Below are positions 36,824 through 42,913 of a stretch of 64,000 nucleotides of DNA, piece after piece (the first letter of the stretch is position 1; every line of letters begins with the position of its first letter). The notes beneath the pieces are model-generated. The model was not told where the DNA came from, searched no databases, and was given only the letters and a program-made list of their open reading frames with translations. This stretch comes from Corallochytrium limacisporum Hawaii (lineage: Eukaryota; Protista; Pluriformea): assembly GCA_002811645.1 (NCBI GenBank), contig PDIP01000087.1, positions 1-64,000 of the forward strand. The letters are read 5' to 3'. The position numbers and the translations under genes are program-made.

Positions 36824-37706
36824 AGAGGGGTCAGATGACATTTGTCCTAGGCTGTCCGGCTATTTGCGCTGGGTGCGCCGGGGTTTACAGAAACGGAGAC
36901 ATCAGCTACTGCAGTCGGTAATGGCTGTATTCCAAAATTTAGTAATGAATGTATGTAATAACAACGAGATAGCATAGGTAGTATCTCTAAATCAACGGAA
37001 GACAGTCCATCCGCGGATATGCTCTATGCCCCGCGACACCGCGGGCTATTTTCGACCCTCCTAACTGAACGTCTTAGGCGCCGACTAGCGTCATCTACGT
37101 GACAATTTCTATACAAATCATATACCTAACCCAAACCGTCCATAAATTGGCAGGTATGCACACCGACTCCCTGTTTCCCCGTTGGGCCCCCTGGGCCCCG
37201 GCTCGCCAGCTCCTAAACCCCCCCCTCCCCAACCCCCTCTCCCGAAGGAACTGGGGGACACGGGCCCGGGCACCCCACAGCCGGCCCGCGGAACAGCCCT
37301 CTACGGAGAGGGGTCTCAGTGCGCAGAGAAGGGGGTGTCCAGTGGCCGCAAAGGACTGGGGTTGTCTGGGGATGTGGGCGTGTGAGTATCGGTTCGGTCT
37401 GTTCGGATGGCCAGTCTAACGCGCACGGTTGTTGACGGTGGATCACTGGTCTTTTCTCACTAGACAGAGGGAAGAAGGCCTTGATGATGTTTAAGTGGGT
37501 GATCGTCTGGTAAATAACAGTCCTGCCAGGTCGACAAGGTTGGGAAAGTTGTACGGACGGGTAGTTCAAGAGGCTCCAATGGTTTACCACTAGCCCTTGC
37601 GGTTATTTGAGTCTAATTCCCGATGTTCTCAGAAGTACTTGTATAGATCTCACTTTCTTGGGTGATCAGATAGTACCAGGAAATAGTATCAGCTTAAGCA
37701 GTCCAT

Positions 37707-39080
37707 ATGCTGACCGTCAGTAGGCACGCTGTCGGCGGGACGCTGCTAAGGGCGTCGTCGCAGCAGCTCCGCAGAAGCCCAGCCATGATGTTCCTTGCCA
37801 CGATTACTACGCAGAAGGGCAAGTCCGCAGCATTCCCAGTGCAATCGAATAATGGCGCCGACCAGGGGGTCGGATGGCGCCTTGAGACAGACAAAAACCT
37901 TGACTACAACTTCTTTATTGATCCCCCGCAGGGTGTCGAGATCCCTCCGGGTGCCAGAGAGGCCGCGGTATGGGCCAGTGAGCACCCCATGACGCTGACC
38001 GCAACGGGTGTCGAGATTGGTAACTTTCGGCTTCCTGTCGACGATGCGGAGGCCACAGCCAGCCACGCGGAGAAGCCACCCGTGAGTGATCAAGACTGGT
38101 TCCTGATCAATCTTCCGACCAATCGCAAGATTGTCTACAATACACTCAAGGCCTTCAGTATGGGACAGCACGTACTCTATTCGGGAGAGACTGGCACGGG
38201 AAAGACTTGGATTGCCCGAAAGATTAGTCAAATGCTTGGTCGTGACCTATACATGGTAAGCCTAAACGAATATACAAAGAACGAGGACCTCACCACGCGG
38301 AACACTTTCGGTGAGGAGAGCGAGGGCAAGACGGCCGTGAGCAAAGCAACAGTGTTGCAATGGATGGAGAACGGAGGCGTGCTGCTCTTAGACGAAATGC
38401 ACAAGCCACTGGAGGGCGTCAGTGTGCTGAACAACATTCTGCAGTATGGCGAGTTCCGCATGAGTCATGGTGCAGTGATTAAACAGAAGGATAGCATCCT
38501 ATGCTCTTGCATTGCTACCATGAATCCACCCAGGCCTCCATACCGAGGGGAGTCACCTTCTGGAGAACTGGCGTCTCGGTTCGGTATTACGCTTGAGGTG
38601 CCGTTCCTGCCCCCAGCTGAAGAGGAGGCTTTGCTATCGTGCTTCATGTCGCCAGAACATGGAGCCAACGGGCGGCCCTTGAGTCGCACACTCGTCTCCA
38701 TTGCCACAGAACTACGCGCGAACTACCCGACAACTATTCCTCTGCCCCTGTCCACACGGTCGTTGATCAACGTTGCACGACACATTGAGGCTTTCCCGGA
38801 GGACAATCCGGAGGAAATCTTCCTGATGACCTTCAACCCCTGCACCGTGGTCGAGGATCTGACAGTACGAAAGGCAATTCACAAGGTCCTAGAGGCCCAT
38901 GACTTGGCTAATCGGGGCGCAAATGCACTGGCTGGGCATGCCAGTCGTCAGGCTGCTGCCACAGCCGGTGCGACGGGCGGTATGTCACGCATGGACCAGA
39001 AAATGATGGAGTCCGAACGTAAGAACAAAGGACTGCTGAACCAGTTTCAGGTCAAGGACAATGAGCCGCAGTTTTTTTGA
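37707..39080 (+). CDS. MoxR/CobS/NorQ-like AAA+ ATPase (AAA_5 type) with putative mitochondrial presequence, 457 aa
   Basis: Walker A GETGTGKT, Walker B LLLDEMHK, sensor I ATMNP, Arg finger LASRF, sensor II STRSL. The N-terminus MLTVSRHAVGGTLLRASSQQLRRS is R/S/L-rich with no acidic residues. Confidence 0.88.
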   Translation: MLTVSRHAVGGTLLRASSQQLRRSPAMMFLATITTQKGKSAAFPVQSNNGADQGVGWRLETDKNLDYNFFIDPPQGVEIPPGAREAAVWASEHPMTLTATGVEIGNFRLPVDDAEATASHAEKPPVSDQDWFLINLPTNRKIVYNTLKAFSMGQHVLYSGETGTGKTWIARKISQMLGRDLYMVSLNEYTKNEDLTTRNTFGEESEGKTAVSKATVLQWMENGGVLLLDEMHKPLEGVSVLNNILQYGEFRMSHGAVIKQKDSILCSCIATMNPPRPPYRGESPSGELASRFGITLEVPFLPPAEEEALLSCFMSPEHGANGRPLSRTLVSIATELRANYPTTIPLPLSTRSLINVARHIEAFPEDNPEEIFLMTFNPCTVVEDLTVRKAIHKVLEAHDLANRGANALAGHASRQAAATAGATGGMSRMDQKMMESERKNKGLLNQFQVKDNEPQFF

Positions 39081-41845
39081 ATGATCCCAATTCATCTCCA
39101 TCCTCCAAACCCATCTCTCCTGTGACTATTCAGGAAAGCGAGCAGAGGTCTCTCGATATATCACAATCGCTGGCGCGTAAAATGGCCACGCTCAGAAAAG
39201 CCGCGTCCGATACAGTACTGACGCAGAGCCAGCGGACAGAGATCGATCGGGCTCTGTTGCATGCACAGGATCCCGCCTTGGACGTGGTAAAAGCAGCAGA
39301 AGAGGACGGGCCTGAGGCACCGATCGAGACCCTGGAGCGTCATGCAGCAAACATCGAATCGATTACCAAATCGGAAGAGGCACTCTTTGGTCATATTATG
39401 CAGTGGTCGGACGTTCGTGATCCGGGCAGTGGTCTTGGCTACACCCCAGGTGGCGATTCCCTGCTGGACTTGAAGGCACAGATTGGAGAAGCCATGATCC
39501 GCGAAGAGGCTCAGAAGCAGGCCCTGCAGCGGCACACCGTAAGGAATGGACAAGAGAGGAACGGAAATAAGGATGGGCGACGCTGGTTCAGTACCGGCAA
39601 GGCCCCGAGGTGGATTGGGATATCATCATCAACAAATCATACTAGTCATCATAGTAGTACTTTCAGTAACACTGACCAGTCTATGAGCACAAACACGGAC
39701 ACTGTCGGTCAGTTCGTTAAGCGGGACTTTACAGTAGTAGTGACTCAGCGGCGACAGATTACCACTGGTGCGGCGGCACCCATGTCCAGGCGTTCGAACC
39801 CGAACGCTCCGAAGTCACAGGCGTTCATCGAAGCAGCAGCAGATGTCCTCACGCAGGCCATGCGTGGCCGTGGCACTTCGACTGAAGGCATCACCGGCAC
39901 CAATCGGCCTCTGACGAGCACAGAACAGCTCCAGATTGCCGCGGAACGGCGCGAATTTGTGGAGGAGCTCGCCAAGGTCGGCCGTATTTTAAGCAAGAAC
40001 CCGGACCTGAAGATGCAGGAGCAAGTCGGGTCCAAGGGCTGGAACTATGATATGGACACCGGCTGCATGAAATTTGAAGGATCCGATGCCTACAACATGA
40101 CGCCACGCGGCCAACAGATCACCTTTGGTCGCCTCGCACACGAATTGTGGATGGCAGAGCATGGCAAATCTGCTGAAGTTGTGGACGGCATCAAGGGCGT
40201 GACCTGCGAAGGTAAGCGTGTGCTCGAGCCGCTGATCACTGTCCTCGACAGAGCCCGGGCTCAAAGCATTGGTTTGATTAATCATCCAGGCGCAGCACCA
40301 TGGATCAACGCCAAGTACAGCGTGGAGCACGAGGTCCATAATCTGCCGCTTCAACAACGTGCGTGGCAGCAGATAGCGAAACCAGAACAGTTGCGCATGG
40401 CCGTGGACTACCGCTGGTGGCAAGGAAAGTGGGATCCCCGCGTCACGGACAAGGAAGTGCTCAAGTGCGCACAGGAAATTGCCACTGCAGTTGATCGCGT
40501 GTTCGATCCGGAGTTGAGTGTTGAAGACGTCAGGCGTGTTATGATGGAAGAAATCGTTCCTGCGTATGCCCAGCTCCTCCCACCAGAAGATCAGCAGAGG
40601 ATCAACGTTCCTCCGGAGGAGGACGGCGACCAGCCTCCCGGTGAGAACGACGAGAACAACACTCCAGGATCCGGCGCTCCGGACCAGGATCCAAATCGCC
40701 CGCAACGGGGAGCATCTGGCAAAGACGACCCAAACTCAGAGCGCCAAGAATCGGACCAAAATCATCCCGGTGAAGATAATGGGAACACGGGTATGGGTGG
40801 ATATTCGGATAAGGAGAACGACCAGGTACCGCCGAAGCCAGAAGAGATGGAAATGGTCGAGCCCGAGACACCGCCGAACCCGCGTAAAAAGTTCATTCAA
40901 GAACTCATGGGCACCAGTCCAGGACAGAAACGGGACCAGGAGGAACGGGCCAAGACTGCAGATGTCTATGAGATCCCCTGGGACACGCGGTACAGCTACG
41001 AAGACATTCGGCTCATGGTCGCGGATCAGGTACCACTGGTTAAGCACCATATGCGCACACTCATGAAACGCAAGTCACGTCGCCGCGTCTCCACGCATAA
41101 GTACTATGGTGATTTGGACGTGAACCGGCTGTATGCCATCCCTGGTGGCAGTCGCAACATTTTCCAGACCGAATCGAAGCCCACCAAGAGTGTCTATCGA
41201 ATAAGTCTAGTCATTGACATCTCCCTGTCCATGCGAGAGCACGACAAGTGCGTGGATGCAGCCCAAGGTGCTGTCATGCTGATGGAGACACTGAACGATA
41301 TTCCTGGAATTGAGTACGAGGTAGTGGGATTCAATTACAGTCCCATGATTTACAAAGCATTTAAGGAACGGCTGCAGCCGGAAGTCAGGGAGAGGGTCGC
41401 GCGCAACATAATGACTCCGCGCGGTGGTACGCGCTGCGGGCGGGCGCTAGGCGACTGCCTCGACCGCCTCAAGCTCACAGGCTCCCGTGGTGAGAAGATG
41501 GTCATTGTGGTGACGGACGGTGATGACCGTCAAGCGGACGAGGTTCATGATCTGTCCAACCATGCTGTGTTGTACGATGGCATAGATGTGCATGGCATTG
41601 GTCTGGGTGAGGAGTGTGCCAATGTCGAGTCTCTTTTCCCGCCGGGTCGTGGCTGGTGGCTCCAGGACGCCAAGGAGATTCCCGAGGTGGTCCGCACGAT
41701 TCTCATGCGCAGCGCCAGTGTACACATTGACTACGAAATGGAACGGGAACGCCGAGTGAAGGCTCAACAGGCAATGCAATCTACATCAACCGAGGCAAGA
41801 GCGAAGTTAACTAATCGGCTTATGAGCATGTTTGATATGCACTAG
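39065..41845 (+). CDS. CobT/NorD/CbbO-like VWA (MIDAS) protein in the -1 frame relative to the upstream AAA ORF
   Basis: Frame is open from 39065; first ATG at 39182. CobT-like LDRARAQSIG..HPGA, acidic D/E/P/N linker, GDLDVNRLY, and a complete MIDAS (DISLS ... GGT ... VTDGD). True start is uncertain. Confidence 0.8.
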   Translation, partial: AAVFLNDPNSSPSSKPISPVTIQESEQRSLDISQSLARKMATLRKAASDTVLTQSQRTEIDRALLHAQDPALDVVKAAEEDGPEAPIETLERHAANIESITKSEEALFGHIMQWSDVRDPGSGLGYTPGGDSLLDLKAQIGEAMIREEAQKQALQRHTVRNGQERNGNKDGRRWFSTGKAPRWIGISSSTNHTSHHSSTFSNTDQSMSTNTDTVGQFVKRDFTVVVTQRRQITTGAAAPMSRRSNPNAPKSQAFIEAAADVLTQAMRGRGTSTEGITGTNRPLTSTEQLQIAAERREFVEELAKVGRILSKNPDLKMQEQVGSKGWNYDMDTGCMKFEGSDAYNMTPRGQQITFGRLAHELWMAEHGKSAEVVDGIKGVTCEGKRVLEPLITVLDRARAQSIGLINHPGAAPWINAKYSVEHEVHNLPLQQRAWQQIAKPEQLRMAVDYRWWQGKWDPRVTDKEVLKCAQEIATAVDRVFDPELSVEDVRRVMMEEIVPAYAQLLPPEDQQRINVPPEEDGDQPPGENDENNTPGSGAPDQDPNRPQRGASGKDDPNSERQESDQNHPGEDNGNTGMGGYSDKENDQVPPKPEEMEMVEPETPPNPRKKFIQELMGTSPGQKRDQEERAKTADVYEIPWDTRYSYEDIRLMVADQVPLVKHHMRTLMKRKSRRRVSTHKYYGDLDVNRLYAIPGGSRNIFQTESKPTKSVYRISLVIDISLSMREHDKCVDAAQGAVMLMETLNDIPGIEYEVVGFNYSPMIYKAFKERLQPEVRERVARNIMTPRGGTRCGRALGDCLDRLKLTGSRGEKMVIVVTDGDDRQADEVHDLSNHAVLYDGIDVHGIGLGEECANVESLFPPGRGWWLQDAKEIPEVVRTILMRSASVHIDYEMERERRVKAQQAMQSTSTEARAKLTNRLMSMFDMH

Positions 41846-42913
41846 CGCGTGTACACGACAGCAAAAAGTGATCCCATCTTGCCCTCAACAATACTTTCAT
41901 ACACATGTACAAAGATAGAACAGACAATTGCCAGGCTGCCTTAGATCCCTTCTCCCACTTCCGGTCGGTCACTCTCGTTCACCCGCGCCAACAATTTGAG
42001 GTCCTCGCGGCGGCCCCACACCTTTGATCCGCCTGAGATTATACTAGAAAAAACAAATCGTGTCCTCCATAGCCAAGACACTCGTGGGTTATTTATATAC
42101 TGACTTCCTATATAGCGTTCACTAGCAATAAACAATTGGGCTATATAGTGAATAGTTTAATATACTTCTTCCTTAACATTTCTGTTCTTGGCACTCGAAA
42201 GCCAGTACCGAGTGAGCTGACCTCCCCCCGGAGGGGGGGGGAGGGCATAGCGCACACACACAACCGCTGGCGGGCCCAGAAAGGCCCAAACTTTCTTTCG
42301 GGAAAAGGCCTGGACGAAGAAAAGGGGGGGCGAAGGGGGAGGGGTCGGGCCCCCCGGGTGACGGTGTGTGCGCCATGCGATCTCCCCTCCCCCCCCCCAC
42401 CCTCTTTTCTCCCCCTTTTTGTTTCGCCGAGGGGCCTGAGGCGGAAGCAGTGCCCGGGGTATTGATTGGAAAAGATTTTTCCTCCATTTATTTTCTATGG
42501 AAAATGATGTGTCGGCCGAGGGGTAGCGTGATGGGGGGGGCCTTTGCCTTCCTTCGAACTTTGGGAGTCCCCACAACCACCAGCAGGCCTTGCTGGCTGG
42601 CTGCTCACGACCCTGCACCGAGATTCCCGAAATCACGGCCTGTGGCTTGGCGCTGCGGATCATGTTCTCGTCAGAGTCCTCCTTCGAAATGTGTTTGCCT
42701 CTTGACTGTTCCATTGACTAGAGCAGTATGTCTCATGTTCCTTGGAATGGTAGTTAAAGCACAGAGTGGGCCAAGGCTATTTGTTTGGATGACTCACCTA
42801 AACAAACACTGGAAAACGATCAAGTCAACGAGCGGGACAAGGTTGTAACCTCTCAGGCTTAAAAGTCTATTCTATTTCGGTTTAACAGATCCATACCTAT
42901 TCAAAGAAAGAAA

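Follow-up and report, generated by a model that had tools for sequence, protein, structure and literature searches.

A candidate programmed -1 frameshift joining an AAA+ ATPase to its VWA partner in a nuclear gene of Corallochytrium limacisporum

A 64,000-nucleotide (nt) window of contig PDIP01000087.1 of the protist Corallochytrium limacisporum Hawaii (the whole stretch of DNA that was analysed, to which all coordinates refer) contains, on the plus strand, an AAA+ ATPase gene whose frame stops at a slippery run, while the -1 frame continues into a VWA domain (Table 1). The first open reading frame (ORF1) ends with CAG TTT TTT TGA, with the T7 run at 39072-39078 and the stop at 39078-39080. 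The -1 frame, called ORF2, is preceded by a TGA at 39062-64 and is open from 39065 through 41845. Joining the frames by a -1 shift at the run gives 1379 amino acids (aa) in a local translation. A sequence-only reading of the window had described this break, the 16-nt overlap and the joined product, and had recognized an AAA+ ATPase and a VWA partner with a metal ion-dependent adhesion site (MIDAS); all these points were confirmed. ORF1 and ORF2 were searched separately against databases, and joined models were translated only locally, for the frame check. In Pfam, ORF1 matched AAA_5 with 63 bits (cut-off 22, E 3.6e-17), and CbbQ_C just under its cut-off (20.3 versus 20.6 bits), and the model of the AAA part (predicted local distance difference test score 72) had NorQ and CbbQ as best Foldseek matches. 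The MIDAS of ORF2 is intact.

Table 1. Features of the two-frame locus (window coordinates).
Feature	Position	Strand	Basis or remark
5' leader	37577..37706	+	RNA-like contigs of both strains start at 37577/37578; contig ends cannot prove the start site
ORF1, 457-aa MoxR/CbbQ-type AAA+ ATPase, 0-frame product	37707..39080	+	ORF translation, domain search, fold
Presequence-like N-terminus, 45 aa: 6 R/K, 0 D/E, 10 S/T	37707..37841	+	composition only
AAA_5 core (Walker A GETGTGKT, Walker B LLLDE) and CbbQ_C helical lid	38169..38897	+	
ORF2 open frame, -1 relative to ORF1, 926 codons; first ATG 39182 gives 887 aa	39065..41845	+	
ORF1/-1-frame overlap, 16 nt	39065..39080	+	frame analysis
Candidate shift site G UUU UUU UGA (U7 and stop)	39071..39080	+	sequence, contigs, run statistics
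Mini-ORF, 14 codons, out-of-frame AUG immediately 3' of ORF1 stop	39081..39125	+	
R/S/T-rich, acid-poor internal spacer, motifs RRWFST and RRQITT	39542..39826	+	composition
CobT_N/NorD-N-like helical domain	39908..40594	+	26% identity to P0002, E 1e-22; P0002 has Pfam CobT
Acidic low-complexity linker; carries the second strain's 15-nt in-frame insertion	40595..40925	+	
VWA domain with MIDAS (DxSxS, T, D)	41204..41704	+	Pfam, homolog alignment
3' trailer	41846..41924	+	RNA-like contigs finish at 41884 and 41924

The junction was compared with Logan contigs from three sequencing runs: a deep DNA run, from which the assembly itself may have been built, and two RNA-like ones that belong to two further studies. 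The RNA-like runs are 13 Mb assemblies whose coverage at the locus is limited to 37577-~41900 and which look like transcriptomes. The T7-TGA junction was matched exactly by contigs of the deep DNA run. One RNA-like run gave contigs identical to the window; the other represents a different strain, set apart by about 18 single-nucleotide polymorphisms (SNPs; 17 listed) and by 15 nt inserted in frame at 40618. Neither RNA-like run had an indel or a splice joint at the junction in its contigs. Two trivial explanations, a T8 run and an intron removing the stop, had been named in advance: no T8 was present in DNA or RNA-like contigs of the two strains, and a constitutive intron is ruled out by the lack of any joint in the RNA-like contigs. 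The frame break is real and is no assembly error. The proposal of a single transcript was supported in part, as one 4326-nt contig of the second strain bridges ORF1 and ORF2, although contigs do not prove a single molecule and drop rare variants, so that minor isoforms may exist. Moreover, 10 of the 14 SNPs in ORF2 are synonymous and 4 are non-synonymous (ratio of non-synonymous to synonymous rates 0.12, binomial p 1.4e-4); therefore, ORF2 is a working coding sequence under purifying selection. The gene is present in one copy in the protist genome (24.11 Mb, 286 contigs). Inside ORF1, the DNA run (X2) showed minor-variant bubbles at 38372 and 38402, with depths of ~7 and 65 versus 370-440.

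The chance expectation in the host genome was estimated from 55 ORFs of at least 300 aa (108 kb coding), taken from the window and a further 200 kb of that genome (264 kb). ORF1 was alone among them in having a T or A run of at least 6 at its end, and ORF1/ORF2 was the sole pair overlapping on the same strand. The T7 frequency was 0.046 per coding kb, giving p ~5e-4 for a given 16-nt coding window.

We also looked for homologs of the two frames. The closest relatives are Elusimicrobiota proteins, with 43-55% identity over the AAA part, and in this group in-frame AAA_5-CobT-VWA fusions reach 1400-1600 aa. Identical domain order in one frame was found in P0002, P0042, P0044, P0048 and the eukaryote-like P0053, a 1035-aa fusion encoded by locus L053, whose contig neighbours are also eukaryote-like. 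In addition, EukProt holds a 370-aa AAA-only homolog from the euglenid Jenningsia fusiforme (P0011). This protein ends in ...SKK, resembling split bacterial ORFs that terminate on an A run. Five Elusimicrobiota loci (L020, L025, L027, L033 and L038) are in fact split, with CobT_N-VWA lying after the AAA ORF and in frame -1 to it, and each carries an A9 or A10 run in the final codons before the AAA stop; a strong downstream hairpin is found in four of the five (z -3.2 to -4.3). L016 is a near-identical sister of L020 with its run at the contig end. The gene at locus L013:12673-12690 (genome G005) is a frame-0 fusion whose linker holds A_AAA_AAG, followed after three codons by a stop in the -1 frame; by its reading frames it is the inverse, dnaX-type layout of the putative signal, in a genome with one copy found. 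Across 330 kb of GC-rich homolog loci there were seven A/T runs of at least 8, all at the AAA-VWA junction.

These runs are associated with copy number. All six run-bearing genomes have one locus (the two hits in G001 are overlapping halves at contig ends), and no run occurs in the loci read from nine multi-copy genomes; in those of the nine with sufficiently long contigs, an AAA-only gene adjoins the fused gene. Fisher's test gave p 2e-4, or 0.002 if two ambiguous genomes are counted against, values that overstate the case because the bacterial genomes are incomplete metagenome-assembled genomes and the run-bearing genes represent only about three lineages. The fused homologs P0002 and P0053, together with the -1 splits at A9-A10 in single-copy genomes, support the recoding interpretation put forward from sequence alone.

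Other features of the family were observed. The Elusimicrobiota proteins P0002, P0018, P0042 and P0044 are extended at the N-terminus by a long segment that often begins like a signal peptide and includes a beta-rich region; this segment is missing from the eukaryotic members. Distant CobT_N-VWA profile matches (P0200, P0056, P0058 and P0066) lie inside giant proteins of 1,800-6,400 aa, and for two of these the source gives the name Omnitrophota. In G183, the frame of an AAA-only paralog is interrupted within the AAA domain (L048:2844), so that this is either a broken gene or an assembly error.

Considering the protist locus together with its homologs, programmed -1 ribosomal frameshifting producing AAA-only and AAA-VWA subunits is probable. 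One mRNA (~37577-41900) would encode both subunits of a MoxR-type AAA+/VWA remodelling machine. The majority of ribosomes would terminate at the UGA, releasing the 457-aa ATPase, while a minority would slip by -1 on U7 and make the 1379-aa AAA-CobT_N-VWA protein, with the junction Q-F-F-L-N-D. In the simplest slip, the tRNA-Phe on the second UUU would shift within the P site and pair again without mismatch, with UGA still awaiting decoding in the A site; tandem slippage on G_UUU_UUU, as an alternative, would yield the identical protein. Both products would carry the presequence-like N-terminus and presumably assemble into a mixed hexamer with few VWA-bearing subunits. In the NorQ system there is one NorD per hexamer (PMC9976466), a proportion that infrequent shifting would provide.

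The shared N-terminus also bears on localization. All three eukaryotic or eukaryote-like members start with a basic, acid-free N-terminus, while ORF2 from its own ATG does not: the 887-aa product has 9 D/E in its first 45 aa and no presequence. This composition points to mitochondrial import of both products through the N-terminus of ORF1. A second presequence-like stretch, the internal spacer at 39542-39826, is absent in bacterial homologs and holds 2 of the 4 non-synonymous SNPs of ORF2; its RRWFST and RRQITT motifs are putative processing-peptidase sites, and the spacer might permit cleavage after import. Between the first ATG of ORF2 and this spacer, positions 39182-39540 encode a helical-looking and strongly coding-like linker of ~120 aa; Pfam and protein searches gave no homolog of it, and neither did the ESM Atlas (queried with the first 130 aa of ORF2).

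The lineage structure of the bacterial data is one of several points that weigh against programmed frameshifting in the protist. The slip site, G_UUU_UUU or U_UUU_UGA, allows re-pairing and is not a canonical X_XXY_YYZ heptamer; the bacterial homologs carry A_AAA_AAA or A_AAA_AAG. A P-site -1 slip at a stop, as reported for potato virus M, has been treated with caution (PMC5009743). No 3' stimulatory structure above shuffled sequence was found at the site (z ~0; pseudoknots and long-range pairing were outside the scope); in particular, the weak hairpin at 39118-39135 noted earlier was no better than shuffles (z 0.05-0.09). The 34 codons between the ORF1 stop and the first ATG of ORF2 (39080-39181) have a codon-usage score of -0.06, between the untranslated-region mean of -0.17 and the coding mean of 0.11, and the ATG at 39182 lies in a strong Kozak context. 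The protist U7 differs from the bacterial A-runs in its base and in lying ~45 codons farther from the AAA lid. Regarding orthologs, the second strain keeps the frame break, but the eukaryote-like L053 is fused and has no slippery run. The eukaryotic sequences sit on long branches outside the clade of Elusimicrobiota, so that inheritance and convergence of the signal are not separable; a VWA-domain tree gave the protist sequence no firm placement. Slippery runs recur at this linker in about three Elusimicrobiota lineages and may or may not share descent with the protist signal.

The main rival is gene fission, in which ATG 39182 serves as an independent start for the 887-aa product, so that the two proteins form a NorQ/NorD-like pair; the mRNA would then be either bicistronic, with reinitiation, or transcribed from a promoter inside the locus. 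Besides the Kozak context, it finds support in EukProt, which lists ORF1 and ORF2 as separate proteins, in the 7% of ORFs that by chance have at least 39 open codons 5' of their first ATG, and in the RNA-like run X3, whose 3' contig is deeper (112 versus 62). In that run, the contig gap coincides with 10 bases at 39369-39378 resembling the start of an Illumina adapter. The contig break at 39376-39403 was considered as an internal start and rejected: it is probably technical, because it lies downstream of ATG 39182 and starts at the adapter-like 10-mer. Against independent initiation, only 101 nt separate the ORF1 stop from ATG 39182, while the next-closest same-strand neighbours are 361 and 369 nt apart, and a poly(A)-like signal is absent from 39000-39300. 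Moreover, the out-of-frame AUG at 39081 is met before 39182, and its mini-ORF would compete with reinitiation there. Fission would also leave the U7 in the overlap unexplained and would produce a VWA protein without presequence. On balance, we consider it unlikely.

The same two products would arise if RNA polymerase II added one U in a minority of transcripts, giving U8. The bacterial A9-A10 runs are of a length that allows efficient slippage by bacterial RNA polymerase (PMC5009743) and could act through polymerase slippage as well as ribosomal shifting, and rare variants in the protist would be dropped by contigs. However, U7 is shorter than the nine-base run cited for efficient slippage, the contigs of both RNA-like runs are free of indel variants, and the stop lies directly on the run, as would suit a ribosomal pause. 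Transcriptional slippage in the protist is therefore quite improbable in our judgement, while programmed -1 recoding by either route, ribosome and polymerase combined, has a good probability.

Slightly less credible still is a minor spliced isoform that removes the stop. Both candidate joins, an 83-nt GT-AG segment at 39051-39133 and a 53-nt one at 39019-39071, are in frame, and a VWA8-like gene of the same genome, discussed below, apparently makes a short/long choice by an intron. On the other hand, a joint was seen in neither RNA-like run, the junction has neither the GTAAGT donor nor the CTAAC branch point of that intron, and the host genome is reported at 0.0 introns per coding kb (PMC5560861). 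A genome-wide scan for GTAAGT..CTAAC..YAG was uninformative, with 66 matches versus 310 in a reversed control. Lastly, a sequencing artefact or a recent 1-nt deletion that broke a fused gene and left ORF2 as a decaying remnant, conceivable considering that homopolymers are prone to indels and that fused homologs exist, is largely refuted and very improbable, as the break is common to two strains, ORF2 differences are mostly synonymous and frame-preserving, and separately assembled DNA and RNA-like contigs are identical at the junction.

Taken as a whole, we lean, if only slightly, towards a eukaryotic nuclear gene in which a stop-stimulated, structure-free -1 shift at U7-UGA sets the proportion of ATPase to adaptor in a mitochondrial MoxR-VWA machine. 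Elusimicrobiota would have arrived at this solution too, through A-run recoding of the same linker, and the VWA8-like gene apparently did so through an intron. Nuclear genes offer few known conserved cases of frameshifting, some of them disputed (PMC11451614); the present candidate comes from a unicellular holozoan that can be cultured, and comparative data support it independently. We found no paper on frameshifting in Corallochytrium or in the Elusimicrobiota AAA-VWA family, within an incomplete coverage of the literature, and the recoded Elusimicrobiota family has apparently not been described before.

Among known systems, VWA8 and midasin are eukaryotic proteins that combine AAA_5 with a C-terminal MIDAS, as the protist gene does, and VWA8, a mitochondrial protein, exists in long and short isoforms (PMC8517341). 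They are multi-AAA polypeptides, while ORF1 has a single AAA module and not three or six in tandem, and the protist genome carries separate VWA8-like and midasin-like loci. In the VWA8-like gene (G000:C228:33407-38850, minus strand; L004, L076), the TAA stop of the AAA ORF overlaps a GTAAGT donor, and a 536-nt candidate intron with a TACTAAC branch point and a CAG acceptor would join it in frame to a MIDAS-bearing frame of 865 codons; transcripts retaining this intron would encode the AAA part alone, a short/long choice of the same kind made by splicing. PEG10 and the Rab-GDI displacement factor gene of Pezizomycotina (U_UUU_UCC) resemble the protist gene in being nuclear, with a U-rich site and a long downstream ORF (PMC5009743), but they have pseudoknot stimulators and encode unrelated proteins. 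The dnaX gene likewise makes a short and a long AAA+ subunit (gamma and tau), through a -1 shift or transcriptional slippage and in either orientation (PMC5009743), in an unrelated clamp-loader family. With respect to NorQ/NorD, CbbQ/CbbO and CobS/CobT, the ORF1 fold is nearest to NorQ and CbbQ, and ORF2 has the layout of NorD and CobT, with an N-domain, a disordered linker and a VWA domain; in those systems the partner is a separate gene, whereas the protist VWA would be tethered to an AAA subunit, and identity is ~20%.

The frameshifted chlD genes (fs-chlD) also hold an AAA+ module, a linker and a VWA domain in one gene, which gives both an AAA-only and an AAA-VWA product through -1 shifting at an A/U-rich site, with 10-63% shifting in reporters (PMC3711429). 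Unlike fs-chlD, the protist gene has an AAA_5/CbbQ-type and not a ChlI-type module and a U7-stop site without hairpin, and its family occurs in Elusimicrobiota and in a eukaryotic nuclear gene. A chelatase subunit identity was rejected, as ORF1 has no Mg_chelatase Pfam match and no chelatase NCBIfam match, and CobS was reached by profile only at E 1.6e-8. In fs-chlD the signal was lost after its N-terminal part was duplicated (PMC9227772). The pattern seen in Elusimicrobiota, either a single gene carrying a slippery run or two run-free paralogs, repeats the one proposed for chlD/chlI and suggests that having short as well as long subunits is a general requirement of AAA-VWA machines.

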